Shown piece by piece: positions 1,608-62,104 of a DNA stretch of 64,000 nucleotides; position 1 is the first letter of the stretch; each line of letters opens with the position of its first letter. The position numbers and the translations under genes were made by a program. Under the pieces are notes generated by a model. The model worked only from the letters and a program-made list of their open reading frames with translations, made no database searches and had not been told where the DNA came from. Location of the stretch: positions 310,001-374,000 of the forward strand of contig OZ287705.1 of assembly GCA_965649825.1 (NCBI GenBank). The letters run 5' to 3'. This DNA is from Penicillus capitatus (taxonomy: Eukaryota > Plantae > Chlorophyta).

Positions 1608-2154
1608 TTCCATCGACAGGACGCATCGACCGTTTGATTCGTTCCAGACCCTTTACCCGTAAGCTGCCTCTTCGAATCAAGCGTTTTTCCGTACAGCCGA
1701 ACGAAACGTTGTGCTCACGGCACACCGCTTATTGTCTTGTTTTTTGTTTGAGCCCTGCAATCCGCTTCAAATTCTTTTACGCGCCGTCCATATCTGCACC
1801 ACGTCACCGTGCCGTCTTCGTTCACTTTTTCGTCAAAGCTGCTGAACCCATTTTGCCGCCGCCGTTTGACTGGCAACGCCTCGTTTCTGATAGACAAACC
1901 ATTCGATTTCGAAGAGGGCAATGGATTTTGGCATGATACATTGTGGAACTTTGTCTCTTGAGGAAGGGAGTCTCACGAGAGACTCAGCGACCAGAGAGCC
2001 GATGGACTGTCATCCTATGGAAGGGGATTCGTGGTACGTCCATCGACAGCCACGTCGTGAATTCTCAGAAGCTACGAACTACGTCAGCGCCAGCTGGCAC
2101 TTCAGTATGACATCGCTTAGGCCAAAACGGCGAGTCGTGTGTGTTCTCTAGCTG

Positions 2155-4207
2155 ATGCGGGAGCTTCTCAGACGGCGGCAGAGACGTCGCAAAACACAGA
2201 GATCGGTATCGATCGTGAACAAGTGCCCGCCAGCCCATCGTGGATTCCGCTCTCGATATGTGAATGGCATGCGTATGCAGAATGATGAAGGGGACGGAAG
2301 GGCCTTGAGCAATGGCGCTGTCGTTAGCCATCCGCCACCACTCCGGCGAGCGATATCCTCGAGCGAAGTCATGCCAAGTCCCTTTCGCACAGCGGCAGGA
2401 ATACAAGCCAATCAGATCTTCGCAAAGAGGTCCGTCCACTTGCCCGCCGTTCGCATCCATCTCATAAGCGATGCACCGCGCTGTCGCGACAGGTACCAGA
2501 TTGAGCAGAGTCCTTTTCCAGAAGAGAAACCGAATGCCAGATTCGCGATCGATATGTCGACAGAGAAGCGCGTCTTTCTCAAATTCTGCCCAGACTCCCT
2601 AACCGAATTCGAAAACGCCATCCGAATGCATCGCATTCTGAATGAGAGTCCACATGTCTGCAAGTTGGGCCGACCCTTTCCAAGAGAACATCGCCAGGCG
2701 GTGCCGCAGGTTGTTGGCCAGTGTCAAGGAACGTGGCTTCCCGCCATGCCTCGTATACGAGAGAGGCGATTACACCCTTGCCGAGCGACTCGTCAAAGAT
2801 CCGCCGTCTATGATCCGCCGACAGGCCGTTCTTCATTCGGTACGCCGTACGGAGCTCTCGTCAGGGGGCAAGCATCTTTCGTTCTGTAGACTCTCGAGGC
2901 GTTAGAGAACATCCATAGGCACGATGTGACGCACGGGCGCTTGGAGCCGGAGAAGATTATGTGGTTTGCGGCTGACTCGTCCTGGAAGCTCATCGATCTG
3001 ACATGCGCCGCCAGTGTCGATGATTGGACATTGGTCAGTGATGTGACAGGTAAGTATGCGGCACCGGAAGTGCAATTCGCTCATCAACACGGACGTCAAC
3101 GCATTCTCATGGAACCGGCGGTCGACATGTGGTCGTTCGGCGTCATCGCGCTCGAAACACTAACAGGTCTGCCTTTCGCGATCGGCAGGGTGAAAAGCGA
3201 TCGGTGTGGATCAGGGAGGACGTTTGTCGATGGGGAGAGCGTGCGGAAAAGCGTCGCCGACTTCGTCTGGGCTTCGGATTCAGATGCTGCCGAGTACGAG
3301 CACAGATGGCTCTATGCCGATCCCGGCGGGCGACGTTCTGGCAGCGATGAGCAGCGGTACCGTCGCTTTTTGCGCAAGCTGCTCTGCAAGAACACGAAGG
3401 ATAGAGTCACGGCATCCGATGCACTCGGAGACATTCTGTTCCGCAACGTCGAAGTCGAGTTGCAACGCAGCCACGCCTTAGTCCAGGTGCGTCTTCGTCT
3501 CACTCTTATCTAACTCTTTTGATCACGCTTCCTTGCAGAGCTCACACAATGCACTTCAGACGGATCCTTTTCTCAGGTCAGTGATCGGCTCTCAGCTGCG
3601 GGTCGAGACGAAGGTGGAAGTCTTCCCCTGCACAAATCCGTCCAACGTGTCCTTCTACTCGAGAGAAGGCGACCATGCCTACACAGATGACGACGAAGAA
3701 CTGGAGGACAGGACGATTTACGTGCTGCGATACGGAGAGCGCTTTCGTTTGCGTCTGACGATCTCCTATGCCGAAGGCTGTCAGCTTCCGATCGAGGAAA
3801 TCGAATCCATCGTCCTGAAAACGCGCAAGGGCACGATCGTTGATCTACCGTATCGAATCGAGAACAGTAGGGACAGTATGAAGCTTGAAGTCGCTGTCAA
3901 AGTGGATCCGACGATCAGCAACTTGAAAGAGCACTTTGCGATCTGTCCGCTTTGCGGAACAGTCAATGAACGCTACCGAAAGGCGACGGTGCAGCTGAGG
4001 TTTCCTGTGGGAGACGATCCCGATTCGGCGCTGGTCAAGAACTGCGAGATCTATTTTCTGATCGTCCGATCTGGCAGAAAACTGCGCCGTTATCGAATGG
4101 CGCGATCGATGCGACAGCGATGGTCACGGCTGCCGAAACCCGCCAAACAGGCGATCCGTATGATCTATCACGGCGTCTCCAAGGCGGTCGAGTGCGTTCT
4201 GCCATAA
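2155..4207 (+). CDS. Multi-exon protein kinase-like protein (predicted pseudokinase K1) with a C-terminal uncharacterised beta-rich domain
   Basis: Kinase subdomains are spread over ORFs 2155-2889, 2642-2905, 2926-3513 and 3533-4207: RVFLKF, PPCLVYERG, HGRLEPEKIMWF, LIDL, YAAPE, DMWSFGVI, RVTASDAL. Short GT-AG introns join them (e.g. ~2664-2709, ~3487-3538). The start is approximate. Confidence 0.85.
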
Positions 4208-12971: not shown

Positions 12972-12976
12972 GTTTC
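12972..12976 (+). other. Left target-site duplication GTTTC of the TRIM+Gypsy composite
   Basis: gtttc directly precedes tgtgaa at 12977, and the same gtttc follows ttcaca at 22416-22420. Confidence 0.9.
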
Positions 12977-13265
12977 TGTGAACGTCGACCCGAGGGCCGA
13001 GTCCGGACCGGATGGCGAGCCGCGCAGGGAAACTCTGTCGGCAATGGCTATTTACATAGCTAGACAGATACAGCACGGCAGCTCCGTTTAAATACCCCGG
13101 ATTAGGAGGGTCACATCATTACGTAAGGCATATCGTCACACCTCTGTCACACGTCTCGTCCTGCGCTCCAATGATGTTCTGCTGGCGTGGCGCCACAGGG
13201 ACGGTTGGCGCGCCAGCAGCGACTCCTCGACAGATGACTCGAGGCAGAACCAGTGACCCTTCACA
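12977..13265 (-). repeat. TRIM 3' LTR (289 bp)
   Basis: Direct repeat of 13709-13997 with TG..CA ends. Confidence 0.95.
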
Positions 13266-13283
13266 TGGGCGCACCCGCATTCC
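13266..13283 (-). other. TRIM motif at the plus-strand priming (PPT) position: GGAATGCGGGTGCGCCCA
   Basis: These 18 nt are identical to 14626-14643 of the Gypsy and abut the 3' LTR. Confidence 0.75.
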
Positions 13284-13695
13284 TGCTGATGCACACTCCG
13301 AGGCACTCTCGCTTCACCACCCTGCTGCTTCCCCTTGCAGCTCTGACACTGACAGGATGAGCGGCGGCGGACAGCACAGGAGAAAACGCAGCGGAAGTCT
13401 TTGTCTCTCGCTGTCCCGAAGCACAGTCTTCAATCTTCACGCACGGTCTTCGGTCTTCACGTCTCCCGAGGCGGTCAGCGAGTCAGACCTGCCCCCGACG
13501 CGGGGCAGCGCTCAGCGCCAGTCCCTCGGTTACGCACCACTCTGGGTCTCCGCTCAGACCCTGCGCTCGAACCCGCTCAAGCGCAGCGGAAGTCTTGAAA
13601 TGCGGGCAGCGCGGCAGCGGATTCTTGGTGGACGGCGCAGAGGATGAAAACGAAAACGGCGCAGTGAGTCGGTGAAAGCCGCACTCACGTAGGCT

Positions 13696-13708
13696 CGCTC
13701 CGAAACCA
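13696..13708 (-). other. TRIM primer-binding site TGGTTTCGGAGCG
   Basis: Abuts the 5' LTR, starts with TGG, and is identical over 13 nt to the Gypsy PBS. Confidence 0.85.
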
Positions 13709-13997
13709 TGTGAACGTCGACCCGAGGGCCGAGTCCGGACCGGATGGCGAGCCGCGCAGGGAAACTCTGTCGGCAATGGCTATTTACATAGCTAGACAGA
13801 TACAGCACGGCAGCTCCGTTTAAATACCCCGGATTAGGAGGGTCACATCATTACGTAAGGCATATCGTCACACCTCTGTCACACGTCTCGTCCTGCGCTC
13901 CAATGATGTTCTGCTGGCGTGGCGCCACAGGGACGGTTGGCGCGCCAGCAGCGACTCCTCGACAGATGACTCGAGGCAGAACCAGTGACCCTTCACA
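13709..13997 (-). repeat. TRIM 5' LTR (289 bp); TATA-like TATTTAA at 13820-13826 (minus strand)
   Basis: Direct repeat of 12977-13265, followed on the minus strand by the PBS. Confidence 0.95.
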
Positions 13998-13998
13998 T

Positions 13999-14625
13999 TG
14001 TGAAGATTCATCTTTCCCGGCCTTCTTGCCGACCTCCGTCACGATGTCTTCCGCCCTTACTTTGTGGACGGGTGGTGGCGGCACGCTCGGCAGGACCGGG
14101 CCTTCGACGTCTCCGGAATGACTCATTTCACAAGCGCAGCGGAAGTCTTGGAAATAGAAGGAGTGATGAGCGGTTCTTGAGGGGTTAGCGACGTTTTGGG
14201 AAGTTCAGAGGTTGCAGCCAAGAGACAACTTGTTACAACTGAGAAGTAGACAGCGAATGTTTTGACGGATTGTATGTGATTCAGAACACAAGTGCAAACT
14301 TTGATGTTTTTTACGAAAGGTGTTTTTATGTGTCAAAACCTTGCTTAAATACTCCGACCCCGATGTGACGACAGGAAAATCAGCTGAACTTCAAGAGTGA
14401 GTTCGCAATGAGGTTCCCACTGAAACCAGGTAATTCATCATGAACTTCTAGAAGTTTCCTAGGAACTTCTTAGGAACTCACTCCCAGTCACCATTACTTA
14501 TTCGCGACTCAGCAGCGACGGTTACGTCGCACAGCCAAAGACGCGACAAGTGCCAAGTGACAGGAATATCATTATTACAGAGACGTCCCATCACCGTTTT
14601 GTCAGAATTGCGCCATTCTTTCACA
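13999..14625 (-). repeat. Gypsy 3' LTR (627 bp)
   Basis: Direct repeat of 21789-22415 with TGTGAA..TTCACA ends. Confidence 0.97.
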
Positions 14626-14643
14626 TGGGCGCACCCGCATTCC
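14626..14643 (-). other. Gypsy motif at the PPT position (non-polypurine, ends in CCA)
   Basis: The sense strand reads GGAATGCGGGTGCGCCCA|TGTGAA, and the TRIM carries the same motif. Confidence 0.75.
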
Positions 14644-14732
14644 CGTTGCGCAAACTCCGATGTGCGGAGCAAAGAAGAAAACCAGCCCACACAGCCTACC
14701 TAGTTAAAATACTGATGACAGCAGATGGTTCT

Positions 14733-15752
14733 TCAGGCGCGACGGCGTATGAGCGCCCGGGGGTCCGAAACCCCCACCTTCGTTGTCTGCGACTGGTACA
14801 GATTTCCATTTACTCTATCTCGCGTCAGGTCGAAAGGCTGCATTATCTCTCTCCCCAGCCTCGTCTCCACCTTGTCTCCCGCGACGGTGAAATTGCAGAC
14901 TTCCATGTGGGGGCCGATCTTCACCCTCGCGGCGGTGCTGCCCACTATCACGCTTGTGCCGCCTTCACTGCGAATGACACGTCCCTCGATTCCTGGCGGG
15001 AGGGGCCCTTGGAGAGGCTGGACACGGAGTCCAAGCAGTTCCGCAGTCGCTCTGCTGACCACGTGACCCGAGAGCTCGGGGTCAATGAGGAAACGGTGTG
15101 GCAATTTGATCTCCCCGAGCTCCCCTGCGGCAATGTATCGCGGTCCTGGCGGTCGGCAAATGGCGGTGAGGGGCGGTGGGTGGGCTCGCGCTGAGAGGAG
15201 CGGCGATTCCGGAGGGGTAGGGGACGGAGGCCGAGGGGGCAAGGGGCTGCGCATCCTTCGCCGCGAGCCCTCCCCGCGACTTCCGCGGCCGCTCCTGCGC
15301 CGGCTTGTTTCGCCTTGGCTGTTTCCTCCACGTGTGGCTTCGACAGGGGTGCTTCCTCTTGTGGCTGGTGTGCCGGGTCCCTCTGCGCAGCGTCGCTCAA
15401 TCTCGGCTATGAGGTCGGCCAGGGTCAGGGAACGACATTGCTCCCTTACCTCGGCCGCCCTCATTTCCGCCATGCTGCGGTCCGTGGTAGGGGCCAGGTT
15501 GTCTGGTGACGGGGTTGGGGTCACGCGCCTGAGGCAGGTGAGACGGTGCAGGTTTCCCTCTGACGCGGACGAGCTTCTTTCCCTCTTCATGGCTTCGAAA
15601 ATGAGAGCGAAGGCGCCCTCGAGAACTCGGAACGCGACAAAGACGGAAAGGCCAACGACGAATTCCTGGGCTACGGCCGGCCACGATTCAATGAATGTCA
15701 GGAGAGTGAGCGTAAACACGAGCGCAAAAAAGCTGAGTACTGCGAAAGACAT
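14733..15752 (-). CDS. Gypsy ORF3 (339 aa, env position): two N-terminal hydrophobic segments, an Arg/Pro-rich linker and a retropepsin-like domain
   Basis: Hydrophobic aa ~2-21 and ~31-52. The C-terminal FLIDPELSGHVVSRATAELLGLRVQPL...LGREIM aligns with the element's own protease MLVDSGSSVCVMP...GWEIQPL...VGVNAL. Confidence 0.8.
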   Translation of the reverse strand: MSFAVLSFFALVFTLTLLTFIESWPAVAQEFVVGLSVFVAFRVLEGAFALIFEAMKRERSSSASEGNLHRLTCLRRVTPTPSPDNLAPTTDRSMAEMRAAEVREQCRSLTLADLIAEIERRCAEGPGTPATRGSTPVEATRGGNSQGETSRRRSGRGSRGEGSRRRMRSPLPPRPPSPTPPESPLLSARAHPPPLTAICRPPGPRYIAAGELGEIKLPHRFLIDPELSGHVVSRATAELLGLRVQPLQGPLPPGIEGRVIRSEGGTSVIVGSTAARVKIGPHMEVCNFTVAGDKVETRLGREIMQPFDLTRDRVNGNLYQSQTTKVGVSDPRALIRRRA

Positions 15753-16025
15753 GAGCGAGCAAATGGTGAAATCCCGGTGCGGGCGGTCCCTTTATACCCC
15801 CGTAACCTCCGAGGACACGTGCCCAGCGCGCGCCCTGACTGGCGGTTATCCTATGGTTCGCCCAAAGGTCATGGCATCCGTCGGGAGCTTCGCTCCGCTG
15901 GAGGAAGCTATCTTCCAACCATCGGGAGTTTCCCTACGCATTTGGTCATCCGCCGCAAACCGTTATGAACTTTGGAAGACAAGGGTGTATCCGTCAGCAA
16001 CCCGTCGGATTATCTAATGAGTGCG

Positions 16026-18887
16026 TCACATCTGCAGCAGCCGTAGCTGGTGCGAGTGACACGACCGGCGATTCCGCCCATCCAGTGTTTCGACCTCGAT
16101 GATATGCGGAGTGATAACAGCGCGGACGCGCCATCCCGACTCCCACTGGGCCGCTAGCTTATGTGCTGGCCGCGGCACCATGATTGCGACCTTGTCTCCA
16201 ACTCGCAGGTTTCTTCTCGTCGGGATGGTCCGCTCGTGTCTTGCTCTTCGCTTCCGCCGTTGGTCGTCCGAACGCTTCCATGCTCTTCCTTGGACTCTGT
16301 CCAGTTCCTCCTTCTGGAGCCGCGTACCATCGGCTCGTTTGCCCGTCATGACGAGACTCGGAGCGTATCCAAGCGCAGAGTGCCATGATTCGTTATACGC
16401 CTTCTCGATACGTTGGAGGAGTGACGGCCATGGCGCACTTGGGCCTTCTCTTCGGATTCGACCCAGGATGGTGCCAATTGCTCGCTCGGCCATTCCATTG
16501 CTCCAGTGAGCATAGGCAGGAGACAGTGCCATCTTCACGTGGCGCCGGCTGCAATACTCTTCGAAGTCGATGGATACAAAAGCTGCGCCTTGGTCACTTA
16601 CGAGCCGGCGAGGGGGCCCGAAGTGATATATCCATTTACGCAGTCCCGCCTTCGCGGCCTCGGCCGTCGGCCCTGCTGAAGCTGTGAGCATGACGTAGCG
16701 GCTGAATCCGTCTATCATGAGAAACACGTGCACGTTGTCTTCCTCCTTTTCCCAGTGTATGGGTCCGAGAAAATCACAAAAGACCGTGTCGTTTGGGCAG
16801 GGGCAATCCCACGAGCCCCAGACGGGTCGCTGAATGGGTCGTCCGTAGGCCTGACATTGCCTGCATCCTTGGACGAACTGTCGGACATGTGTTCTCATCC
16901 CTGGCCAATCCGCTCCCGTTGCTTTGAGGTTCCTCAGCGTTGTCTGCCAGTTGAAGTGCCCTTCGTGAGCCTTCTTGATCTGCCTCAGCTGGCCTCGTGT
17001 CGGGCCCGCCGTTGCCTGAGACACCTCGGCTGCGCCCTTTCCCTTACGGGGTCTGGATAAGAGGTCCGCGCCTTGGTTTTCTGCCCCGGGAACGAATTCG
17101 ACAATGAAGTTTTCGTTTCCTAGGAGCCATCCCAGTAGGCGCAGTACTCGCTTGTCCTTGAGACTTGGCGTGCTGGTGCTCAGTTGCTCGGCGACCGCTT
17201 GGTTGTCCGTCCGGATGAGCAAAGGAAAGTCCCCTCGCAACGGCTTTGTTGCTTGACAGGCCCACACGATTGCCTTGAGTTCCCCGAGGAAAGATGAAGT
17301 CACTTCCGGCACACTCTTGCTCCCGAGGTCGACGAGGTGCTCGTGGTTTGACCCTTTGGCCCACAGCAGATATCCCGCGTGCTCTCCGGACCAATCCGTC
17401 TCGAGAATGTATTGCGTCGTCCGGAGACCAGGCAGTTCGAGCAATACCTGTCGATCGAGGGCTCGCAGAAGCACCTCCCAGACTTCCCGTCGGGCTCGGT
17501 CCCACCACTTGCCGTCTTGTTTTCTTGCCTTGGCTTCTGCTAGCAGCTGTCGGAGGGGCGCTATCAATCTCTCGAGGTCCACAATGGTTCGCCTCAGATA
17601 GGAGAGCACTCCGATGAGGCGCTCAAGATCTTTCCAGTGCGTCACCTTTCCGAGTTGGGTCCAGCGACTGCGGAAGTAGTCTGTCAGCGTCCACGACCCA
17701 TGCGACAGTTCCATCCCCAGGAACTTGACTTTCGTCAGCAGGAGCTCGGTCTTCGCGAGGTTGACCTTGAGCCCGAACTCCTGGAAGCGAGCAAAGATGC
17801 TGCGGACGCGGTCACAGAGTTCTTCTGGGGTAGTACCACCGACAAGGAGGTCGTCGGCATACTGCACTGCGCCGAGCCCCTGTACAATCTCTGCTACCCG
17901 TTCCGCGAAGAGGATCGGACTCCATGACCATCCCTGCGGCAGGCGCTTCCAGGCGTAACGGCGGTCCTGCCAAGTGAACGCGAATGCAGACTGCAGCTCT
18001 GGGCACACCGGGATGGCGAAGAAACCATCCTTGAGGTCCAGCTTCGCAAAGTACCTCCATGCCGGGTCTACATCCCACAGCCGCCGCCAGACGTCGATCT
18101 GGGTCATTCCATGTTTCTTGAAGTGAGCGTTCAACCAACGAAAGTCGTTGGTGAACCTGTAGCTCCCATCCTTCTTTGGGATGGGGTACAGGGGGCTTAG
18201 AGCCACTCGCTCACCCATGGAGACCTGTCGGAGATAGCCGCGCTGAACATAGTGCTCAAGCTGTTCGGCTATCTTGCGTCGGTCGGCGACCTGCTCTGTC
18301 TTGTATGATGTGCGCAACCCTTGCTCTCTGGGTGGTGTCCAGCAGACTTCGTCGGCTCTGACCTGGAGGGGCTCCATTGCGGGCACGATGGGGTGCCGGC
18401 TTAGGTCGCTGACGTCAGGAAAACGACGCGCTAGCTCGTTTCGCAGGGACTCGGCAAGGGTGTCAACGGCGACTGAGCCGATCTTGGCTAGCCGGACTAC
18501 CTCAATGCTGCTGTGTCCGTGCAAAGAAACGAGGGGCGTGGTCGGAGTGACTCGAATCACTCTTTCTGACGTATTGTAGACCTCACATCGTACCATTCCT
18601 CCAGAGGTTACTACTACTCCAGATAGAACCTCGGGTCGCTGAAAACAGCTAGCTATGGTGACGCCGCCTTCTACTTCTAGCTTCCACGGGAGGTACCAGC
18701 GTTCCCAAGTCCTTGGCGGCAAGAATCTTGGCTTTCCACTTTGCAGCTGGACTCCCTTTGGAGTGACTGAGATTCCCGTTCCGTCCTTGATCTCCCATTG
18801 CTGGTGCACGCGAACAGTGCCGCCCCTCCCGTGGCTTTTGGAGGGGGCAGTTAGTTTGGGTGGTGCGCTGCTTGCACTGCCGCGCAC
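16026..18887 (-). CDS. pol: Gypsy Pol: dUTPase-like remnant, RT, RNase H, integrase with GPY/F-like tail
   Basis: RT motifs: PIPKKDGSYRF, LDLKDGFF, LPQGW, YADD (17850-17861). RNase H: ETD..GELKA..RTDN. Integrase: H-x3-H...CRQC, CDF, SDQG, NGMAE. Confidence 0.95.
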   Translation of the reverse strand: MRGSASSAPPKLTAPSKSHGRGGTVRVHQQWEIKDGTGISVTPKGVQLQSGKPRFLPPRTWERWYLPWKLEVEGGVTIASCFQRPEVLSGVVVTSGGMVRCEVYNTSERVIRVTPTTPLVSLHGHSSIEVVRLAKIGSVAVDTLAESLRNELARRFPDVSDLSRHPIVPAMEPLQVRADEVCWTPPREQGLRTSYKTEQVADRRKIAEQLEHYVQRGYLRQVSMGERVALSPLYPIPKKDGSYRFTNDFRWLNAHFKKHGMTQIDVWRRLWDVDPAWRYFAKLDLKDGFFAIPVCPELQSAFAFTWQDRRYAWKRLPQGWSWSPILFAERVAEIVQGLGAVQYADDLLVGGTTPEELCDRVRSIFARFQEFGLKVNLAKTELLLTKVKFLGMELSHGSWTLTDYFRSRWTQLGKVTHWKDLERLIGVLSYLRRTIVDLERLIAPLRQLLAEAKARKQDGKWWDRARREVWEVLLRALDRQVLLELPGLRTTQYILETDWSGEHAGYLLWAKGSNHEHLVDLGSKSVPEVTSSFLGELKAIVWACQATKPLRGDFPLLIRTDNQAVAEQLSTSTPSLKDKRVLRLLGWLLGNENFIVEFVPGAENQGADLLSRPRKGKGAAEVSQATAGPTRGQLRQIKKAHEGHFNWQTTLRNLKATGADWPGMRTHVRQFVQGCRQCQAYGRPIQRPVWGSWDCPCPNDTVFCDFLGPIHWEKEEDNVHVFLMIDGFSRYVMLTASAGPTAEAAKAGLRKWIYHFGPPRRLVSDQGAAFVSIDFEEYCSRRHVKMALSPAYAHWSNGMAERAIGTILGRIRREGPSAPWPSLLQRIEKAYNESWHSALGYAPSLVMTGKRADGTRLQKEELDRVQGRAWKRSDDQRRKRRARHERTIPTRRNLRVGDKVAIMVPRPAHKLAAQWESGWRVRAVITPHIIEVETLDGRNRRSCHSHQLRLLQM
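18822..18860 (-). promoter_or_regulatory. -1 programmed ribosomal frameshift signal (gag-pro to pol)
   Basis: The heptamer C-CCA-AAC (18860-18854) lies in the ORF1 frame just before TAA. After a 5-nt spacer comes a GC-rich hairpin (18848-18822). Pol is in the -1 frame. Confidence 0.85.
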
Positions 18888-21800
18888 ATAACCGAGCGCC
18901 CGTCCGGGGCCACGAGTCGGTTTCCCGCGAAATCCAAACTCCAGCCGAAATCTCGCAGAGCGTTTACGCCAACGATTGGGTGTTCAGGCCCGTCCACCAC
19001 GAGAAACGGCACTTGTCTTGTCTCTCCGCCAATGTCCACTGGGAGGCCCACTCGGCCTCGAACCTGGGTTGTCACACCGTTGAATGCTTGGACTTCCATG
19101 GGCTCAGGGAGGGGCTGTATCTCCCAACCACCTTGTATGCAGCGTTCCGTGGGCATCACGCACACGGAGGAGCCCGAATCCACGAGCATCTGGACTGGAC
19201 TAGCCCCCTCAGCCAGCTTGGCGCGTACGTAGTAGAGACGCGATGGGTCACTACTTGTGGCGGCGTCCCATACCGCTGCCACTGGTGGCCTGTCGCTTGG
19301 TCCCTCGTCGGGCGCTCGTTGCTGTTCTTCCGGGACGTGCACCACTTGCTGCCAGAAGTGTGGGCATTCTCCGGTTGCGTGATCTCGGGCGTTGCAGTTT
19401 GCGCAACGTCTTGGTGGCGGAAGCCGCGAGGCCTGCATAGCCGGTACGGCGGGCCTACCCATTCGTGGCGTCCTTGATGGTCCGGGAGAGGGAGGTCTGG
19501 GCATTGTCGGCCTGATCATGGGCGGGGGCTGTCCTCTTGCGGCGGCTGCCTGTCGTTCTTCTACGCGATGGAGTCGATCCAGTATGCTTTCGATACTCCC
19601 TAGGCCTTGGAGAACGACAGGATGCGGGGCCTGCGGGAGCTCGTCGGCTTCTCCGTCACTGGCTGGTCGGTCTTCCCATGCGACGAAAGGCCTAGCAGCT
19701 TGCTGTGGCTGTCCTTCGTCCGAGTTGTATCCCGTTCCCCTGCCTCCGCGCCCTCGACCGCGTCCTCGGCGCCCTTGATTTCTCCCACGTCCTTGGTGGC
19801 TTCTTCCTTGACCTCTTCCTTCGCGGGTTCCTCGCGGGACGGTGGGGGAGGGGGCCGCTGGTGGTGCCGGTGGCGGTGCTGTCATGTTGGCTTCCTGACG
19901 TGGTGCCGCTGGAGGTGCTGGCGGCGGTGCCACGTTGGCTTCCTGACGGGGTGCCGCATTTTGTTGTGCTGGCTGCGTCGCTGGCTGCTGTCCGCTTCGC
20001 TGTTGTTCCCTCTGCTGGTTTTGATGAGCGGCAGCTGTCCGAGCCCTGCGAGGTCTTTGCGGTGGCGGCACCGGGATTGGTTGTGTTCGCTGTTGCGAGA
20101 CGAAGCTTCCGATAAAGAGCAGTGGCTGGACAACGAGCCAGTAAGCGACCCAAAAAGGGAAGTAAAGGACCGCAGCAGTGCCCCACGTCAGGCTGTAAAT
20201 ACTGCGCATGGTGTCCTGTCCGAGATCGACGACCGAGTGAACTCCGTCGGCGATCCTCTTGACCACGGTGGCGACCAGAGCTAACGTCATGAGGATTCCT
20301 ACCAAGGCCAGCACGAGCAGGATCAGTCCGAGGTTTTGATTGCTTCCGGCGGCCCTAACGCTGAGGAGGGCCTGGAGGCCGTCGACCATGTTCGGACTTA
20401 TGACGAACCGAAGCAGACCCACCGCCCAGTGCGCTGGGCTCACGACAAACCCATACCATCCTGCAGCCCATGCGCCCCACGTTCTTGTAGGTGGCGCCTG
20501 GACCGAGCGAGTAAAGGTGGCTATCATATCTGCGCTTGCCGCAAGCTTCCTGGTTTGCTCAAGAACGGTTGGCATGAGTTCTCGGACTGCCCCCAGCTCA
20601 CCCTGCAGTTGCCCCTTGATTGCGTTCACGCCGTCTTGTGCTGCCCTAGCGATGGCTCGGTCGATGACTTGGAGTACTTCCCATCCTTTTTCGTCAGCTT
20701 CGTCCGTCATTTGTCGAGCCATTTGTAGGATGCTGAGATTGATCTGGTTGACGGCGCGGGTCGTCCCCGTGAGGAAGGACGTGGTTCCAGCCTCAGCTGA
20801 CGACGGGGGTGCCAATGTAAACTTGTGGTGCCAGGCTGAGCCGGTAACCCGTCGCCGGTGCATTCTCGTCAGGGCTTGCTCATAGTGTTCTTTCAGCTTG
20901 TCCATCTGTTCCCTGGCGAGCTGTCCGCGTCGTTCGGCCTTCTCTCCCCAACGCCTGGAGAATTCGAGGGCGTCGTTGGCTATGTCCACCAGTGATCGAT
21001 TCTGATACATACGCGGGCTCACTCCCAGGTATCCAGCATAAATTTCCTTGGCGGCTTCCTGGAACGCGGCGTGTAGGACCTTTTCGTCTAGGTCGAAGAT
21101 GAGCGGTTGACACTCTGTGCGCCAGCCATACAATGTGGGCATCCAGGTCTTTACCAGTCGCTCGCCCAGGGGGCAATTCGCGAGGTCTTCGACTTTAGTT
21201 GCGAACGCAGAGAACTGGCGCTCAATGCGTTCCTCCATCGTATATGGCATGCCGAACATCCGGATGGCTGCCACATGCATGACTGGAAAGAGGCATAGGT
21301 ATACGAAAAAGGTAATCCACAGAATCGTGCTTGTCTTTCGCCGTCCCCGGGGCCTTGGGTTGTCTCCTTCGGAGGGACCTTCGTCAGGTCGCTCTGGCAG
21401 CTCATCCCTCCCGAGGTCTTGCAGCGCGTTGTATGCTTTCGTGGCGTTTTCCGACAGCCACTTCCCCAAGCGTGCGAACCAGTCATACTTGTAAGCGCAT
21501 GTGAGGAGGACGACTAGTGCAATGAATGCCGCGGTACGCAGGGTGCTGCCCCAAGCCCAATCCCAGAAGATGCCGAAGACGCAGAGAATGGTAGCGCCAA
21601 TAGCAAGCTCTTCCACACGAGGGCCTCTCCCTTCGGGTACGGGTGATGGTCTGGCCCGAGGTCGTGGATGCGGGCCGTGCTCCAGCGCTCTTCGACGGGC
21701 TTCTTCGGCGAGTCGTTGCTGCTCTGGGTCGGCTAGAATCTCTGAAGCGGTTCTCTGAACGTCGCGACTCGACCCCGCTCCGAAACCATGTGAAGATTCA

Positions 21801-21916
21801 TCTTTCCCGGCCTTCTTGCCGACCTCCGTCACGATGTCTTCCGCCCTTACTTTGTGGACGGGTGGTGGCGGCACGCTCGGCAGGACCGGGCCTTCGACGT
21901 CTCCGGAATGACTCAT
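18851..21916 (-). CDS. gag: Gypsy ORF1 (1021 aa): multi-TM Gag-like protein, CCHC zinc knuckle and aspartic protease
   Basis: CANCNARDHATGEC (CX2CX4HX4C) and LVDSG are present, with several long hydrophobic segments in the N-terminal ~610 aa. The ATG lies inside the 5' LTR. Confidence 0.9.
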   Translation of the reverse strand: MSHSGDVEGPVLPSVPPPPVHKVRAEDIVTEVGKKAGKDESSHGFGAGSSRDVQRTASEILADPEQQRLAEEARRRALEHGPHPRPRARPSPVPEGRGPRVEELAIGATILCVFGIFWDWAWGSTLRTAAFIALVVLLTCAYKYDWFARLGKWLSENATKAYNALQDLGRDELPERPDEGPSEGDNPRPRGRRKTSTILWITFFVYLCLFPVMHVAAIRMFGMPYTMEERIERQFSAFATKVEDLANCPLGERLVKTWMPTLYGWRTECQPLIFDLDEKVLHAAFQEAAKEIYAGYLGVSPRMYQNRSLVDIANDALEFSRRWGEKAERRGQLAREQMDKLKEHYEQALTRMHRRRVTGSAWHHKFTLAPPSSAEAGTTSFLTGTTRAVNQINLSILQMARQMTDEADEKGWEVLQVIDRAIARAAQDGVNAIKGQLQGELGAVRELMPTVLEQTRKLAASADMIATFTRSVQAPPTRTWGAWAAGWYGFVVSPAHWAVGLLRFVISPNMVDGLQALLSVRAAGSNQNLGLILLVLALVGILMTLALVATVVKRIADGVHSVVDLGQDTMRSIYSLTWGTAAVLYFPFWVAYWLVVQPLLFIGSFVSQQRTQPIPVPPPQRPRRARTAAAHQNQQREQQRSGQQPATQPAQQNAAPRQEANVAPPPAPPAAPRQEANMTAPPPAPPAAPSPTVPRGTREGRGQGRSHQGRGRNQGRRGRGRGRGGRGTGYNSDEGQPQQAARPFVAWEDRPASDGEADELPQAPHPVVLQGLGSIESILDRLHRVEERQAAAARGQPPPMIRPTMPRPPSPGPSRTPRMGRPAVPAMQASRLPPPRRCANCNARDHATGECPHFWQQVVHVPEEQQRAPDEGPSDRPPVAAVWDAATSSDPSRLYYVRAKLAEGASPVQMLVDSGSSVCVMPTERCIQGGWEIQPLPEPMEVQAFNGVTTQVRGRVGLPVDIGGETRQVPFLVVDGPEHPIVGVNALRDFGWSLDFAGNRLVAPDGRSVMCAAVQAAHHPN
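21776..21788 (-). other. Gypsy primer-binding site TGGTTTCGGAGCG (degenerate tRNA-iMet type)
   Basis: Abuts the 5' LTR and matches 10 of 12 positions of the plant-type iMet PBS TGGTATCAGAGC (recalled; the host tRNA is not in this window). Confidence 0.8.
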
Positions 21917-22415
21917 TTCACAAGCGCAGCGGAAGTCTTGGAAATAGAAGGAGTGATGAGCGGTTCTTGAGGGGTTAGCGACGTTTTGGGAAGTTCAGAG
22001 GTTGCAGCCAAGAGACAACTTGTTACAACTGAGAAGTAGACAGCGAATGTTTTGACGGATTGTATGTGATTCAGAACACAAGTGCAAACTTTGATGTTTT
22101 TTACGAAAGGTGTTTTTATGTGTCAAAACCTTGCTTAAATACTCCGACCCCGATGTGACGACAGGAAAATCAGCTGAACTTCAAGAGTGAGTTCGCAATG
22201 AGGTTCCCACTGAAACCAGGTAATTCATCATGAACTTCTAGAAGTTTCCTAGGAACTTCTTAGGAACTCACTCCCAGTCACCATTACTTATTCGCGACTC
22301 AGCAGCGACGGTTACGTCGCACAGCCAAAGACGCGACAAGTGCCAAGTGACAGGAATATCATTATTACAGAGACGTCCCATCACCGTTTTGTCAGAATTG
22401 CGCCATTCTTTCACA
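21789..22415 (-). repeat. Gypsy 5' LTR; TATTTAA at 22135-22141 and a 3-unit HSE-like motif at 22235-22249
   Basis: Direct repeat of 13999-14625, followed on the minus strand by the PBS. Confidence 0.97.
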
Positions 22416-22420
22416 GTTTC
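22416..22420 (+). other. Right target-site duplication GTTTC
   Basis: Matches 12972-12976. Confidence 0.9.
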
Positions 22421-26814: not shown

Positions 26815-29800
26815 ATGCGCATGATAAGAAACGGACTGGCTGTCGCTGGTGCCATCCTCTTTCTCCTTGTCTGGGCCGTCGTCAGTCAAACGCCGATCGC
26901 AGGTAATTCCTGACATTCACGAGCAGACGAGCATTCCTTCATGACACAAAGTCCTTTCTCGGCTTGGACCCTCGTCGCGCATCGCATCTTTTCTGCTCGT
27001 CTTCCGTTCGCTTCTTTGTATCTGTGGATACGTCGTCGACTGCGTCTGTGTGCAGACTCGAGATGCAAACTCCCTGAAGACGTTAAAGAAGAACTCCGCG
27101 TCGGTGAAGATCGGACATGGCGTATCACCGAAGCGCTCCAAGAACAGCACGGCATTCAGCAAATCATCGATTGCGCAGAACAAGGCGACGTCGTATCGCT
27201 GGATACTTCGCTGGCGATTCGACCGTCGACGAGAATCGTGATTCAGCGCGATGTGACCATAGTGGGAGGCCAGCGACTCGGCGGACGATCTCCGACGAAG
27301 CGAACTGCGTTCATCTGCCCTCCAGACAAAGGACTGTTTCTTCTGAAGTGCGTCTCGCCTGTCTTCCGCTTCACAAACACACTGTGGACTGCAGAAGCGG
27401 CTTCTCCTTGGTCAACGTTGTTATTAAAGACTGCCATCTGACCGAGGAGCACAAAGTCGCGGCCATCATCGAAGCGGACTCCTGCCAGCAGTCATCTTTT
27501 GTGAGGCCCAAAGTGTATCTTTCCAACGTGCAGTTCCAAAACAACACGAATCGCGGCGGATCTGCGGGTCTCGTCGTGCAAGGTCCGTCGTGTGACGGCG
27601 TGGTCGAACTGCTCGACGTCGCATTCAAGGAGAACGTGTATTCCAAAGCATCCGTGTTGGCGAGAGAGAACACTTTGACGGACGTTCGAGTTGTCGGCAA
27701 TCGAAGAATTGCTAACAACAACCAGGAGACGTCTTTCTTTTGCCTTCCCGACAATTCCTCATCAAAGGTGACGAAAATGACGGCGAAGGACAACGCGAAT
27801 GCGGGCGTTCTTTACGTCGAACGGGGGGAGCTGAACGTTTCGTCCTCTCTCTTCCAGAACAACGCCGGAAAATGGAACGCGGTCGTCGAGACTTTGTCGT
27901 CTTCGCTGATCGTGCGTGAAACGCGTTTTCTCGACAATTCCTGCAAGTGCCGCGCCGTGGCAGTCTTCGGACATCAACCACTGTCGTTTGACTTTTCGTC
28001 TTGTACTTTCGCTGGCAACGTCGCTGACGGCAAGGACAGTGGCGTTGTCTATGCGACGAATCCGCGCGTCCTGCGTTTTTTCCTATGCGATTTCGTCGAC
28101 AACGTCATACGCAGTTCGAATGGAAGGACGGTTGCGTTAGATGGGCTTGACTCGGAGACAAAGGAGGAAGGGCGAGAGATCACGACGGTCGTGGAATTCC
28201 TCCGCTGTCGGTTTTTGAGAAACGCGGCTGCCTATGTGACGGCCGTGCGCCTTTATGAAGTCCGCGCACGAACAGTTTTCTTCCATTCCTGTCACGTGCA
28301 GAACAACACGACACCGGACGATTCCCCTGTGCATCGACAGACAGTGGTCCTTGTGAAGGATAGTTTTCTGCACAATCTCACGATGGCGAACTGCACGTTC
28401 GAATCGAACGACTGCACTCGACATGTGCTGTCGCTCTTCTCCGCCAATGGCACGTTCTGGATCCGAAACACCTCCTTCGCCGACAACAGAACTCCTCAGG
28501 CTGGGCAAGGGAGCACGCTGAATGTACAGAGAAGAACAGTGAGCAACGAGCACTTGTTGGCGCAGAGCGCCTCTGACAATGGAGCCGTCCTCAGTGTGGA
28601 AGATTCAGAGTTCCGAAGAAATGGTGGCGACTTGGCTGGCGGCGCCGTGCATGTGGCAGATGAACAAACGCGGGTGGAGCTGCTCGACAGTCGATTCCTG
28701 GATAATCGCGCTGAGAAGGGCGGGGCGGTTTTCGTAGAGAATGCTCGCTTAGTGGATATCGACAACTGCACTTTCGCGCGGAATAGTGCCACAGATGTTG
28801 GCGGAGCGATACGTCTGCAGAGTGGTAGCGCAGAAATCCGGAAGTGCACTTTCGTTGAGAACACGGGCGAGCACGGCGGTGCGATCGATACCATGACGAA
28901 CATCCTGGTCCAGGACTCAGAGTTCTTCGGAAACAAGGCCAGCATCAGAGGAGGCGCCATGAGTATCAGATGCCTAGAATCTTTTCCTTGCAAGCCACGC
29001 ATTCTCGGATCCGCATTCTGGCGAAATCGAGCAGGCAGATCTGGCGGCGCTCTCCACGTGTACGCGAGCGGAACGTTGCCACTAGAGAACTGTCGTTTCA
29101 TCGAGAACAATGCGACATATGGTGGAGGCATTTCGCTGTTCCGTGTGCGGAAGAGTGCGGGGTGGTACATAACGAACTCGAATTTCTCTCGGAATAGTGC
29201 AGCGACAGGAGGTAAGGCACGAGATCCTTCCTCGTTCAAATCTAACTGGGCTGCCTTGATCGCAGGAGCGATTTCGATAATGGACAGTGCGGAAGAGCAA
29301 TCCTCGAATCGGTCGCAGAACGACGTTGCCGGGAGGTTCTACTTCAGCGGCACCGTCATCACGCAGAACACCGCGACGCTGTCGGGCGCCGGCATCTTCG
29401 CCGAAGATCCATCTCTCCTCAGCATCGACGGGTCATCGGTAAACGTGCCAGAGAAAACGTTCAACTGCCAAACCATGGAGACACCGCCGAGCAGTGCTCT
29501 CGGGAAGATTTTTCGAAACAATACTGTCGTCGGAGGACACGAAGAGAATCTGGCAAGTTTGCCTGTCGGCTTCTGCGTCTCTGTCTTCAAAGGAGGTCGA
29601 CTGGCAGACACCATCTCGGAAGACAGTACGTACGTGCTGCCTCGGTGGCGAAGCGGCGACGATTTCCCAGTCCTGCGCGTGATGATGTACGACCCTTTTG
29701 CGAACATCTTTGCGCATACCAGGAATCGAGACTGCAAGAGAGGGACGACGTCCGTCGACGAGCCAGAGGAGGCGTACGAGCAGCCCGTCAATGCAGTGCT

Positions 29801-31952
29801 GTTTTCAGAAGCGGAAGATGCGTCTATGGGCCGCTTCTTGATGAACAGCGTGTACGAAGACATCTCCTCCGGCGGCGGTAACATATCCGTGGGCAATCCC
29901 TACGTCAAACCAGGACGTTATCGACTCACACTGCTGGTTGAGGGATTCGAGCAACAGAACGTGACGCTGGAAGTCCACGTCCGCGACTGCACCATCGACG
30001 AAGAGTCCGACCGCGACGACACATTCTGTCGTCCTTGTGACTCGAACCAATACAACTTCCAATCGGCAGGCTTGGCGTGGAAGTGCACACTCTGTCCAGA
30101 GAACGCCGACTGCACGACGGAGTTCATACTCCCGAGAAAAGGTTTCTGGAACGCGTTTCCGTGCTCCAACCAGATGGAGCGATGCGTCTACAAAGACGCG
30201 TGCAACTTCACTGGATCGGACAAACTGGCGGCGCTGACCGAGTTTGAAACGCCTTGCGTCTTCAGCGACGACGCCATCGAGCAGTACCAATCCAGTGAGT
30301 GCGCCGAGGAGTACGAGGGTCCGCTGTGCGGGTCCTGTCTTGACGACGCAGGCCGACTGGGAAGCTTCGTCTGCGCGCCCTGTATGTCGGAGTTTCTTTC
30401 CGTCGTCGGGCTTCTTGGCCTTCTGGTTCTCCAGTTGATCCTCGCCCTCTTGCCGATGCGAGAGACACTGAACGCCGAGCGCGATCATCAGGAGGACAGA
30501 ATGACGGCTTTGAGTTTTATGCGACGAACGAGAAGAGCGACACGTCCCCCTGGAAGATACGAATTCGCTGGCGGCGGGCGGAGTTCTCGAGTGAGAACCG
30601 CGATCGTGCGAACTGGAACGACGACGATCCGCTCGAACGCCCGCAAAGCGAGCAGAGCCAAGCAATGTTTTCTTGGAACGTTAAAGGTAACCCTGTCCTC
30701 CGGACGGCGGTCGAATCTCAGTCCTGTCTTATAGATCACTATCAATTTTCTCCAAACAGTGGCTATTGCAGCCTCGTTGGACGTCTCGTGGAACTTCACC
30801 GCCATCTCTTTCTTCAGAACCTGGGGTAAGTAATCGTACTCGAAGAAAGAACGTTTCTATGCAAACTGCGCCTTTTCAGATTCTATGAGCGCTGCTGCCT
30901 CCGTCGGGGCTTCGTTGTTTCTGGACTGTTTGCTCTCCGGCAAAAGTGGAGCTCCACGAACTGTCAAGCGCCAGATCATCGTTGCACTGCTACCAGAGAT
31001 CGTCGCCCTCGTCATTTCGTTGTTCTTTCTTCTGAGAGAGCTAAAGGGGGACAAGGACTGGAACAGACTCCTCAGAAGAGCCATCCTGGCCCACATCGTC
31101 GTCGGCTACAACTCTTATCTCGTACTGGTAAAGGTCGCCATCGATGCATTCAACTGCGTCCGCGTGCACGATGGCATCCGTCTCGAAGACATCGGCATGA
31201 CGCATCGCTACTGGATCGCAGACACGTCTGTGGAGTGCTTCAGCAGCACCCATCTGAACTTCACTCTTGCCGTCTCCGTCCCACTGCTTCTCTTCGCCAT
31301 CCTGTTTCCACTTCTGCTGGTCATTCTTCTGGAACGCGCTCGTGGACAAAACAAGCTCTCGTCCAAGTGGACGCAGGAGACGATGGGATTCCTGTTTATC
31401 GTTTTCGAGGAGAACTACGTCTACTGGGATTGTCTGATCCTCTTGCGAAAGGCCATTCTCTCGGTCATCATCGTCTTCGCCTACAGACTCGGAGGCAATC
31501 TCCAAGGTCTTCTCGTAATGGCCGTCCTCGTCATCGCTCTCTTTGTGCAAACGTATCTCGGTCCTTTCAAAAAGGAACTGGTCAGTTTGAACGTACTGGA
31601 AAGCGTTTCCCTTCTGGTGAGTTTCTTTACTTTTATGTGTGGACTCATTCTGAACAACGAGAGATTTCACGGTGTCCTCATGAAGGGACTCGTCACGGCA
31701 CTGCTGCTCAGCAGCAACGTCGGACTTTTTGTCATTCTCGTTTTCTTCTTGGCGCGAAGCAAGTTGGAACAAGTCAGATTGGAACTTAAGATGATGCAAG
31801 CTGATGCCGGCAACGGGTCTCTTCACCAAATCGCATGGTCTTATCTGACATTCCAGATTGCACGTCTCCGGGGACTGATTGATAAGCAGGACTCGGTCGA
31901 CGACGCGGAAGAGTTAGTTCCGCAACCATCCATTGAGCTTTCGGGGGTGTGA
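26815..31952 (+). CDS. Large cell-surface membrane protein: signal peptide, pectin-lyase-like beta-helix (Pmp-type GGA[IV]/FxxN repeats), Cys-rich region and multi-pass TM C-terminus
   Basis: Exon 1 (26815-26902) encodes MRMIRNGLAVAGAILFLLVWAVVSQ. Repeats of the form F..N.A..GGA[IV] and the Cys-rich CRPC..CTLCPENADC..GPLCGSC follow, then a hydrophobic ORF at 30885-31952. GT-AG introns include 27348-27394. Confidence 0.85.
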
Positions 31953-33087: not shown

Positions 33088-33552
33088 GGTGGTAATCACG
33101 AAATGAAATGCCATTTTATGGGATAATCACGAAAGTGCCTTGGGTAATCACGAAATGAAATGCCATTTTTTGGGATAATCACGAAAGTGCCTTGGGTAAT
33201 CACGAAATGAAATGCCATTTTTGTTTTTTCTTTTTTTTTTTTTTTGTTTTTTCTTTTTTTTCTTTTTTGATTTTTTGGGGTAATCACGAAATGAAATGCC
33301 ATTTTTTGGGGTAATCACGAAATGAAATGCCATTCCTTGGGGTGGTAATCACGAAATGAAATGCCATTCCTTGGGGTGGTAATCACGAAATGAAATGCCA
33401 TTCCTTGGGGTGGTAATCACGAAATGAAATGCCATTCCTTGGGGTGGTAATCACGAAATGAAATGCCATTCCTTGGGGTGGTAATCACGAAATGAAATGC
33501 CATTCCTTGGGGTGGTAATCACGAAATGAAATGCCATTTTGGGGTAATCACG
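33088..33552. repeat. 34-bp minisatellite (ggtaatcacgaaatgaaatgccattccttggggt), about 7 near-perfect units plus variant units and a T-rich insert
   Basis: The 34-nt period is readable from 33311 onward. Variant units occupy 33088-33310. Confidence 0.95.
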
Positions 33553-34125
33553 AGGATGTCCTTCCTTCCGGGATTCCTCAACCAGGTCGAAGGGAAGGCC
33601 GCCTACAAGGGACGACCCTCACCCCGCCTTCGGGACTAACGGGTGGGCCCGACGCCGTAGAAGCCGCTCAACAGTCCGCGCCACAACCGTCGCACGATTG
33701 CCGCCATCGACGGCAGCGTCTCATGCGCTGTGTGAAAGGTTCTTTATCGACGGACAACCGAACGACGAGTTCGACGTAGTGGGACCGGAGCTGCGCAACT
33801 GTGGGGGAGTATCTCCCGGAAAGAAGGGCCATCCGAGGATGTCCCCCCAATCCGAGATTCCTCAACCAGGTCGAAGCAAAGGCCGCCTACAGGAGACGAC
33901 CCTCACCCCGCCTTCGGGACTAACGGGTGGGCCCGACGCCGCAGAAGCCGCTCAACGGCCCCCGCCACAACCGCCGCACGATTGCCGCCGTTCTCGGCAG
34001 CGTCTCATGCGCTGTGGTAAGGTCTTCGATAGTACAATACTTCAATATGACGGACAACCGAACGACGCGTTCGACGCATCCGGACTGGAGCTGCGCAACT
34101 ACGGGGGAGTATCTCCCGGAAAGAA
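33552..34125. repeat. Two diverged ~283-bp tandem units (starting at 33552 and 33835)
   Basis: Both units share gaggatgtcc...gattcctcaaccaggtcgaag...cttcgggactaacgggtgggcccgacgcc...gggggagtatctcccggaaagaa. Confidence 0.9.
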
Positions 34126-58639: not shown

Positions 58640-58800
58640 GCGTGCCCCGGAGGAGTGACCGCGCTCACAGCTAGACTTCGGTGTGAGACCATCTCATCCA
58701 ATACATCACTCTTTATCTGCCAAAGTGTGACCCGAAACGCCGAAGACCGTTCGGACAGGCACTCCACCTTATCGTACGGAATGGTATTTCGATCGCCGTG

Positions 58801-59270
58801 TCACTCCGGCGAAGAACATCCATCATGAGTTCCGGTACGGCGACTGTCGAATGATGAGCGTGATATCTCTTTGCCGTGGATATAAATCTTGAGTGGATCT
58901 GACGCGTGACACGAGTACAAGAGCACAAGACCATTTTTTCTGCGATCAAATAGATCCCCATATGAAAGATTTGATGACACGCAATGAAACACCTGCTGTT
59001 GCAAGTTCACTCTCCTGATCGGTGGGTGGACTCTTCCATGTATTGTGTACACACTTTCTTGAAAGCTGTCCCATGCACAGTAGATGTTATTGTTCAGCAA
59101 GCTCAGTCTATGAAGCTTGTTTGATTGAAAGTCGATACCTGTTGTCGTTGAGAAGCACGTTGCTCTGTTTAAGCCTTTGCATCTGAAATTGAGGCGTTTG
59201 GCAATGCACTGCCTCGTTCCAACCTTGCCACGCCGATATCCTTCTTCAACGGGGGCAGAACGAAATTAAC
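58801..59270 (-). CDS. Hypothetical protein, 3' exon (duplication copy 1)
   Basis: Open frame of ~150 codons ending CSSPE*. The paralogue at 62105-62589 ends at the same position (CGSSQE*). Confidence 0.4.
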
Positions 59271-61965: not shown

Positions 61966-62104
61966 ACTTCAGTGTGAGACCATCCCATCCAATAGCTCAC
62001 TCTTTATCCGCCAAAGTGTGACCCGAAACGCCATGGGACCCTTCGGGCTAGCACTCCAGTCTGTCATGCAGAGTGATAACTGCATGGTGTTTCCGATAGC
62101 TGTG

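Follow-up and report, generated by a model that had tools for sequence, protein, structure and literature searches.

To our knowledge, retroviruses and LTR retrotransposons are held without exception to prime the plus strand from an RNase H-resistant polypurine tract (PPT), and annotation tools look for such a tract. Plus-strand priming in trans is not known to us from any LTR retroelement; in every studied case that we know of, the primer is a piece of the element's own RNA spared by RNase H. Canonical PPTs, such as AAAAGAAAAGGGGGG of HIV-1 and GAGAGAGAGGAAGA of Ty3, lie immediately 5' of U3 and define the start of plus-strand strong-stop DNA; according to the accepted model of reverse transcription, this start in turn sets the left edge of the LTR. 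Outside the LTR elements, hepadnaviruses prime their plus strand with the capped 5' terminus of the pregenome, which is translocated from DR1 to DR2.

Pieces of tRNA are known as primers of the other strand. In copia (Drosophila) and Ty5 (yeast), an initiator tRNA cut in the anticodon loop primes the minus strand, the cut in copia lying near nt 39-40. Priming by a truncated tRNA has been reported only in the Copia superfamily, and for the minus strand only. Extended contacts with the primer tRNA are known for Ty1 and Ty3, and 5' halves of the initiator tRNA, 31-33 nt long, are natural species in human cells. Moreover, the TRIMs Cassandra, Helenus and Ajax, which are non-autonomous and depend on an autonomous partner, carry tRNA- or 5S-derived sequence; in these families, the small-RNA sequence is part of the LTR and has been interpreted as a Pol III promoter.

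Here, we examined a window of 64 kb (the whole stretch of DNA analysed), in which a preliminary description had noticed an 18-mer ending in CCA in the place of a PPT. A direct-repeat pair of 627 bp, 100% identical and reading TGTGAA...TTCACA, is found at 13999-14625 and 21789-22415, and all long ORFs between the two repeats are on the minus strand. ORF1 (18851-21916) encodes gag and an aspartic protease of the retroviral type (Pfam PR), and ORF2 (16026-18887) encodes reverse transcriptase (RT), RNase H and integrase (Pfam RVT_1, RT_RNaseH, Integrase_H2C2 and rve). Given that the ORFs are on the minus strand and follow the order RT-RNase H-integrase, the large element is a minus-strand Ty3/gypsy element, of which 13999-14625 is the 3' LTR and 21789-22415 the 5' LTR. 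The assignment to Ty3/gypsy (Metaviridae) agrees with the Pfam domains, in the order PR-RT-RNase H-integrase between TG...CA LTRs, and with a 5-bp target site duplication (TSD). The canonical primer binding site (PBS), TGGTTTCGGAGC, is at 21777-21788 (minus strand) and is complementary to the tRNA 3' end GCUCCGAAACCA. Because the gag ATG, at 21916, is inside the 5' LTR, 128 nt before the LTR end, the PBS of this element is itself translated (…GFGA…). In the relatives L001-L004, gag also starts 128-293 nt inside the LTR, and gag of Ty1 likewise begins within the LTR. A third frame, ORF3 (14733-15752, minus strand, 339 aa), has hydrophobic segments at its start and no match in Pfam, and could encode an env-like or membrane protein; relatives of it were seen in L004 (9068-10117, 49% identity) and L002 (8951-9949, 29%), with a weaker match in L005.

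The second element is a probable TRIM of 1021 bp (12977-13997, minus strand), made up of a 443-bp non-coding interior between two LTRs of 289 bp that are 100% identical (the 3' LTR at 12977-13265 and the other at 13709-13997). Its PBS, again TGGTTTCGGAGC, is at 13697-13708 (minus strand), and the sole ORF of the interior, 158 aa on the plus strand (13171-13647), is partly in the LTR and has no Pfam match. The autonomous element and the TRIM stand head to tail in the element sense (12972-22420) with one base between them, T at 13998 on the plus strand and A in the element sense. Neither has a target duplication of its own; the 5-bp TSD GTTTC (12972-12976 on the left, plus strand, and 22416-22420 on the right) flanks the two as one unit, and TSDs of 5 bp abut TG and CA in L001 (CCGTG) and L003 (GTGTT) as they do around the window composite, so that the LTR edges are exact. 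The arrangement looks like two cDNAs linked at their ends that entered the genome as a single unit. As for the additional A at 13998, it could derive from the plus-strand primer (…CCCA), as its final base, or have been added without a template.

Because 13999-14625 is the 3' LTR, the 18-mer GGAATGCGGGTGCGCCCA at 14626-14643 (minus strand) occupies exactly the position of a PPT, abutting the TG of that LTR. As the preliminary description had stated for both elements, it lies immediately before the 3' LTR, the exact second copy at 13266-13283 (minus strand) abutting the 3' LTR of the TRIM. These are the only two occurrences of GGAATGCGGGTGCGCCCA in the 64-kb window, both on the minus strand; at a tolerance of up to 3 mismatches, the chance expectation is 0.02 matches, and none of 100 shuffles gave two. 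The earlier count of 7 pyrimidines in 18 bases was reproduced, as was the reading on the other strand, where TGGGCGCACCCGCATTCC directly follows TTCACA. The remark that this reading mirrors the PBS end was apt, since the site on the other strand resembles an anticodon-loop PBS of the copia/Ty5 type (CA/TGGGC...).

The absence of a PPT at this position, also claimed before, was borne out. Counted back from the 3' LTR of the autonomous element, purines make up 3 of the last 8, 6 of the last 12 and 11 of the last 18 nt. Over the last 40 nt, purine runs reach at most 5 nt, against a run of ~8-15 nt, all or almost all purine, in a canonical PPT. Within 220 nt of this LTR there is no 12-nt window with at least 11 purines, and a purine tract is likewise absent in all seven relatives examined. 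We had considered the site as a degenerate G-rich PPT like that of Ty1, a reading that was dropped after the tRNA alignment described below. An internal second copy, which might act as a central plus-strand primer, was sought in the element; only near matches with 2-3 mismatches turned up, in coding sequence, and the near match GGTGTGCCCA in RT is accounted for by the codons of a conserved motif. Because the left edge of the LTR is fixed by the start of strong-stop DNA, we infer within tight bounds that the 3' end of the plus-strand primer lies at the CCA or within a few nt of it.

We aligned the 45 nt before each 3' LTR to tRNAs and expressed the scores as z values relative to shuffles. The reference tRNAs were those of human, plant and yeast, and complementarity to the host tRNA is judged from these other organisms; of the references, the human initiator sequence was verified. 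Against human initiator tRNA-Met, z was 2.6-5.8 in nine elements and 4.0-8.0 in three further ones, and against a plant initiator sequence, whose 3' end agrees with the plant PBS, it was 3.2-8.3. The yeast initiator and five elongator tRNAs (including elongator Met) gave z of at most 1.6, and twelve control regions gave -1.7 to 2.4. The autonomous element of the window scored 7.3 with the plant sequence and 4.5 with the human one. The alignments begin at tRNA nt 1 or in the D arm, and 11 of the 12 end exactly on the first T of the LTR, which corresponds to U36; the twelfth, that of L003, extends a few nt beyond U36. In the autonomous element, the local alignment runs from nt 1 to U36 and again ends at the first T of the LTR.

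By alignment, then, nt 1-35 of initiator tRNA-Met are reproduced in sense orientation in the 36-37 nt before each 3' LTR in the window. This copy comprises 36 nt in the autonomous element (14626-14661, minus strand, ATCGGAGTTTGCGCAACGGGAATGCGGGTGCGCCCA) and 37 nt in the TRIM (13266-13302, minus strand, CTCGGAGTGTGCATCAGCAGGAATGCGGGTGCGCCCA), and contains the 5' acceptor strand with U8, the D arm, the anticodon stem and the loop bases C32-C33-C34-A35. Its first part in the autonomous element is an acceptor-strand box, ATCGGAGT (14654-14661, minus strand), in which TTCGGAG is followed by a T that matches U8 of tRNAs. The 18-mer corresponds to about nt 19-35, that is, to the end of the D loop, the 3' strand of the D stem, G26, the 5' strand of the anticodon stem and C32-C33-C34-A35. 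On the same alignment, the terminal CCA of the 18-mer is C33-C34-A35 of the anticodon loop and the first T of the LTR is U36, so that the anticodon CAU spans the junction with the LTR. Both C33 and the D arm GCGCAGCGGAAG are initiator features and are present in the human sequence. It should be noted that the copy in the autonomous element differs from the tRNA at A15, at C30 and by an extra G and T in the D loop.

A search with the ORF2 protein found relatives with 90% to ~35% identity, all of them in marine or other environmental assemblies, and their contigs were fetched; ENA ERZ26696514 and ERZ25074695 are among the assemblies with such elements. A metagenome scan for relatives gave four usable loci, and a scan of viral contigs gave one irrelevant match. 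In the relatives, the TGT of the 3' LTR is invariably preceded by CCA, with a block of mixed G and Y in front of it. This block is GCGGGTGCGCCCA in the window element, the TRIM, L001, L002 and L004, GTGGTGTGCCCA in L003, GCTGGCGTGCCCA in L007, GTTGTGGGCCCA in L009, GCTGGCGGGACCA in L005, AAGTGTGCCCA in L027 and GGCTGTGCCCA in L026. No block among these is rich in purines. A blind scan downstream of pol recovered two more sites, in L025 (…GGTGTGCCCA before TGT) and in L028 (TTCGGAGTGTGCAACAGTGGATAGCGGGATGCGCCCA before TGT); downstream of pol in L006, L008 and L012 no site was recognisable, and these contigs may be incomplete. Three of the loci (L025, L026 and L028) are on ENA contigs labelled as circular (..._c, 1x-4x coverage) and show tandem copies with a single LTR between interiors, either as extrachromosomal circular or tandem DNA or through collapse of LTRs in the assembly.

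Overall, the tRNA-half copy was found in 14 elements (the window element, the TRIM and 12 relatives) over a range of pol identity from 90% to ~37%, and it spans the 30-60 nt before the 3' LTR. Its last 9-13 nt are the best-conserved part of the site. Two parts of the copy are conserved, the box and nt 26-35, and the D-arm part differs among elements in both sequence and length. At positions 28 and 30, the elements mostly alternate between T and C, and position 30 is T or C in 12 of the 14 elements. Conservation in related elements had been put forward as a test of the motif, and its core is indeed kept where pol identity is only ~37-56%, which argues that the priming site is under selection. 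The earlier argument from the TRIM, that conservation in an otherwise unrelated element implies function, stands as far as selection goes, and fails in its premise: the TRIM is not unrelated and shares its cis signals with the autonomous element, with LTR termini, PBS, a D-arm-complement motif and the whole tRNA-half copy common to both.

Moreover, the PBS and a motif in U5 match, by their sequence, the same initiator tRNA as the half-copy, at its 3' end and its D arm, respectively. The PBS TGGTTTCGGAGC follows the 5' LTR in every lineage from 90% to ~45% pol identity, save for a one-base variant, TGGTTTCGAAGC (CGAAG), in L011, L014 and L025. The box (UUCGGAG) is the exact pairing partner of the tRNA 3' strand GCUCCGAAACCA that this PBS binds; its block, TTCGGAGT, lies 20-60 nt upstream of the CCA-ending block and shares an 8-mer with the PBS. 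In L014 (TTCGAAGG) and L025 (CCGAAGT), the two CGAAG-PBS lineages in which the 3' site is available, the box too reads CGAAG, and the remaining elements have CGGAG at both PBS and box. The U5 motif CTTCCGCTGCGC (21924-21935, minus strand) is a perfect complement of initiator D-arm nt 10-21 and lies 8 nt upstream of the gag ATG, with a second copy at 14134-14145 (minus strand) in the 3' LTR. It is conserved in U5 of five elements (the window element and L001-L004), 94-154 nt upstream of the PBS, and the D-arm part of the half-copy has drifted from the D-arm sequence that it implies. A conserved 17-mer, CAAGACTTCCGCTGCGC, encloses the motif and, in autonomous elements, precedes the gag ATG at a short distance within U5. 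In the TRIM, the D-arm-complement motif is downstream of the PBS (13581-13592, with a one-mismatch copy at 13386-13397, minus strand). Although the TRIM has little beyond cis signals, the PBS is kept in it, as are the complement of the D arm and the half-tRNA copy in full length.

Being in the sense of the tRNA, the half-copy is unable to pair with that tRNA on the genomic RNA and would pair on minus-strand DNA instead. We therefore considered a primer with the sequence of the initiator tRNA 5' half that ends at A35. That a 5' fragment of the initiator tRNA, cut in the anticodon loop, anneals to the minus-strand DNA and primes the plus strand is a proposal that we hold to be evenly poised. The primer would most likely come in trans from the packaged primer tRNA, which an assumed nuclease would cut after A35 to release a fragment with a 3'-OH. 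Once RNase H had cleared the genomic RNA, the single-stranded arms of the fragment (nt 1-8 and 26-35) would anneal to the minus-strand DNA, while its D hairpin could remain folded, and RT would extend it from A35 into U3. Both RNA-DNA junctions would then be r(...CCA)-d(TGT...), giving symmetric ends for primer removal and integration. The fuller proposal, in which one tRNA supplies two primers and the PPT is dispensed with, the 5' half of the packaged initiator tRNA-Met that primes the minus strand serving for the plus strand, falls just short of an even prospect in our judgement.

Several features fit the trans proposal. It is favoured because the half-copy pairs only with minus-strand DNA, and the copia and Ty5 fragments and the human 5' halves provide precedent. 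The mirror symmetry of the PBS and the 3' site would follow, because both primer-DNA junctions would read r(CCA)-d(TGT). A fragment with a folded D arm that binds by its two free arms fits the conservation, because the box and nt 26-35 are kept and the D arm is variable, and the alternation of T and C at positions 28 and 30 fits a fixed U in the primer, because U:A and U:G pairs would both be tolerated. This last point is also where the proposal is weakest. Initiator tRNAs almost universally have G29-G30-G31; the main weakness is that, unless the hosts have U30, the primer would be mispaired in most elements at a position 6 nt before its end. We also count against it that the tRNA inferred from the elements has U1:A72, the hallmark of eukaryotic initiators being A1:U72, that the D-arm part has drifted, that trans priming of this strand has no known example among LTR retroelements and that the evidence is comparative throughout.

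Among the other explanations, the strongest is a primer in cis, in which genomic RNA ending in ...GYGCCCA is spared by RNase H and extended by RT, the likeness to a tRNA being a relic. The relic would stem from an old template switch onto the primer tRNA, of which RT would copy only the part from U36 toward the 5' end because A37 is heavily modified, and RNase H would since have adapted to a non-purine sequence. We regard this as possible but rather unlikely. It has the weight of being the default mechanism, and a constraint from the footprint of RNase H and RT would account for the last 9-13 nt being the best conserved; T or C at position 30 in most members poses no problem for it, nor does the drift of the D-arm part. 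PPTs, moreover, have no universal consensus and tolerate some pyrimidines (review PMC3185511). However, the 3 purines in the last 8 nt of most members are unlike characterised PPTs, and a cis primer leaves unexplained why the likeness extends over a whole tRNA half in lineages that can no longer be aligned in the non-coding DNA around it, why different tRNA segments are kept by different lineages and why the box tracks the PBS variant. A mimic of the tRNA might instead serve a non-priming role on the genomic RNA, with the plus-strand primer defined by some other, unrecognised feature. A second initiator tRNA could, for example, be bound through its 3' acceptor strand by the box, or the segment could take part in a 5'-3' bridging as in Ty3, which would act in minus-strand initiation or transfer. 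Extended, bipartite contacts of Ty1 and Ty3 with the initiator tRNA and the D-arm complement in U5 speak for such a role, and the covariation of box and PBS suits any model in which the box pairs with the tRNA 3' strand. We nevertheless consider it improbable: a copy in the tRNA's own sense allows only short helices (7 bp and 5 bp), a role in binding alone explains neither the exact ending at the U3 edge in 14 of 14 elements nor the missing PPT, and the D arm, the part best suited to 5'-3' pairing with the U5 motif, is the least conserved.

The preliminary description had itself offered two explanations, and neither of them fares well in the form in which it was given. In one, a structured or tRNA-like self-primer, the RNA before U3 would fold back on itself, as a hairpin or in a tRNA-like form, and prime from its own 3' end. 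For the window element one can draw a GCGCA/TGCGC hairpin, but RNAalifold found no consensus pairs across nine members, and single-sequence folds of the site were no better than those of shuffles (z from -0.56 to +2.18), three being worse. Rfam returned nothing relevant for the element, or for the site alone with truncation allowed, ARAGORN did not match the site either, and against self-priming of the Tf1 type, stretches of 7 nt or more complementary to the PBS or the 18-mer are absent from the LTR. We give this explanation hardly any credence. In the other, a second small RNA ending in CCA, the site is tRNA-related and a small-RNA primer is a serious candidate, but the CCA is not a 3' terminus of a tRNA or other small RNA. 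A second mature tRNA or small RNA with the 3' end ...GCGGGUGCGCCCA, annealing by its CCA end, would agree with a motif that ends in CCA and mirrors the PBS junction. Read as a tRNA 3' end, however, the 18-mer gives C73, C1:G72 and A61 and no T-loop, position 61 being a near-invariant C in tRNAs, and it aligns instead to the anticodon region of the initiator (nt 19-35). The motif also differs between lineages in one assembly (GCGGGTGCGCCCA in L002 and L004, GTGGTGTGCCCA in L003). We disfavour this version and give it practically no credence. Literature searches for the PBS, the motif and the inferred tRNA-end strings returned nothing relevant, and a further search found no report of a tRNA-primed plus strand or of a tRNA-derived plus-strand priming site.

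Compared with the known systems, the 3' site is closest to the half-tRNA primers of copia and Ty5. As in those elements, the primer species would be the 5' part of initiator tRNA-Met, cut off within the anticodon loop or stem, and the site, with its half-tRNA sequence in 14 elements, lies directly against an inner LTR edge. Unlike theirs, which is beside the 5' LTR on the genomic RNA and serves the minus strand, the copy in the window family is in the sense orientation and beside the 3' LTR. Moreover, this family is Ty3/gypsy and keeps a normal PBS for the 3' end of the same tRNA, and the implied cut is after A35, compared with near nt 39-40. The site shares with canonical PPTs its place immediately 5' of U3, where the start of strong-stop DNA is defined, and differs from them in having a tRNA sequence that is not purine-rich. 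From a PBS of the usual type, which binds the 3'-CCA end of a mature tRNA, it is set apart by the A at 61 and the lack of a T-loop.

Like the extended PBSs of Ty3 and Ty1, the elements would have several contacts with the initiator tRNA, through the 12-nt PBS for its 3' end and the 12-nt D-arm complement in U5. In Ty3, the 3' segment is located within U3 and forms a complement of the T and D arms, whereas that of the window family is in the sense orientation and outside U3; the 3' site is thus not a bipartite PBS of the Ty3 type, and the D-arm complement is a separate motif in U5. The TRIM is like Cassandra, Helenus and Ajax in its tRNA-derived sequence and its dependence, but its half tRNA is outside the LTR, at the plus-strand priming site, and common to the autonomous element. 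The hepadnaviral primer resembles the proposed one as a non-purine RNA oligomer chosen by sequence complementarity with no PPT involved, although it comes from the virus's own pregenome and not from a piece of host tRNA, and the replicon is not an LTR element.

At the sequence level, this family and its dependent TRIM, with a tRNA-half copy at the position of the PPT, are an exception to the PPT rule and offer a concrete, testable candidate for second-strand priming by a host RNA. If trans priming holds, this would be the first LTR retroelement plus strand primed in trans by a host RNA, and a new mechanism. A tRNA fragment may then prime both DNA strands, which would extend half-tRNA priming from the Copia superfamily and the minus strand to Ty3/gypsy and the other strand, and would link the biogenesis of tRNA halves with retroelement replication. 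If the primer acts in cis, the family would instead have an RNase H with a non-purine cleavage specificity, with bearing on how PPTs are recognised. The motif set of PBS TGGTTTCGGAGC, U5 motif CTTCCGCTGCGC and ...GYGCCCA before TGT can be used to locate such elements and their TRIMs where PPT-based annotation fails.

ARAGORN found no tRNA gene in the window and, on 20 loci, one odd tRNA unrelated to either priming site. In L004, a tRNA-like gene at 1848-1920 (minus strand), ~360 bp from the 5' LTR of the element, has an odd anticodon loop, possibly with an intron, and its 3' end matches neither priming site. Large proteins with right-handed beta-helix/Chlam_PMP repeats are encoded near the elements, at 27117-30734 (plus strand) in the window and at 13385-14800 in L003. 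Pfam matches of neighbouring ORFs were uninformative about the host, but long ORFs free of introns and the Tara/marine origin of the samples point to a marine microbial eukaryote. Elsewhere in the window, about nine tandem 34-bp units occupy 33276-33581 and are followed by a repeat pair of ~280-300 bp at 33567-34125. Diverged duplications with 72-91% identity, probably paralogous genes, link 2882-3828 with 37787-38734, 35 kb apart, and 56872-59989 with 60302-63307, the latter as tandem units of ~3.3 kb near the end of the window.
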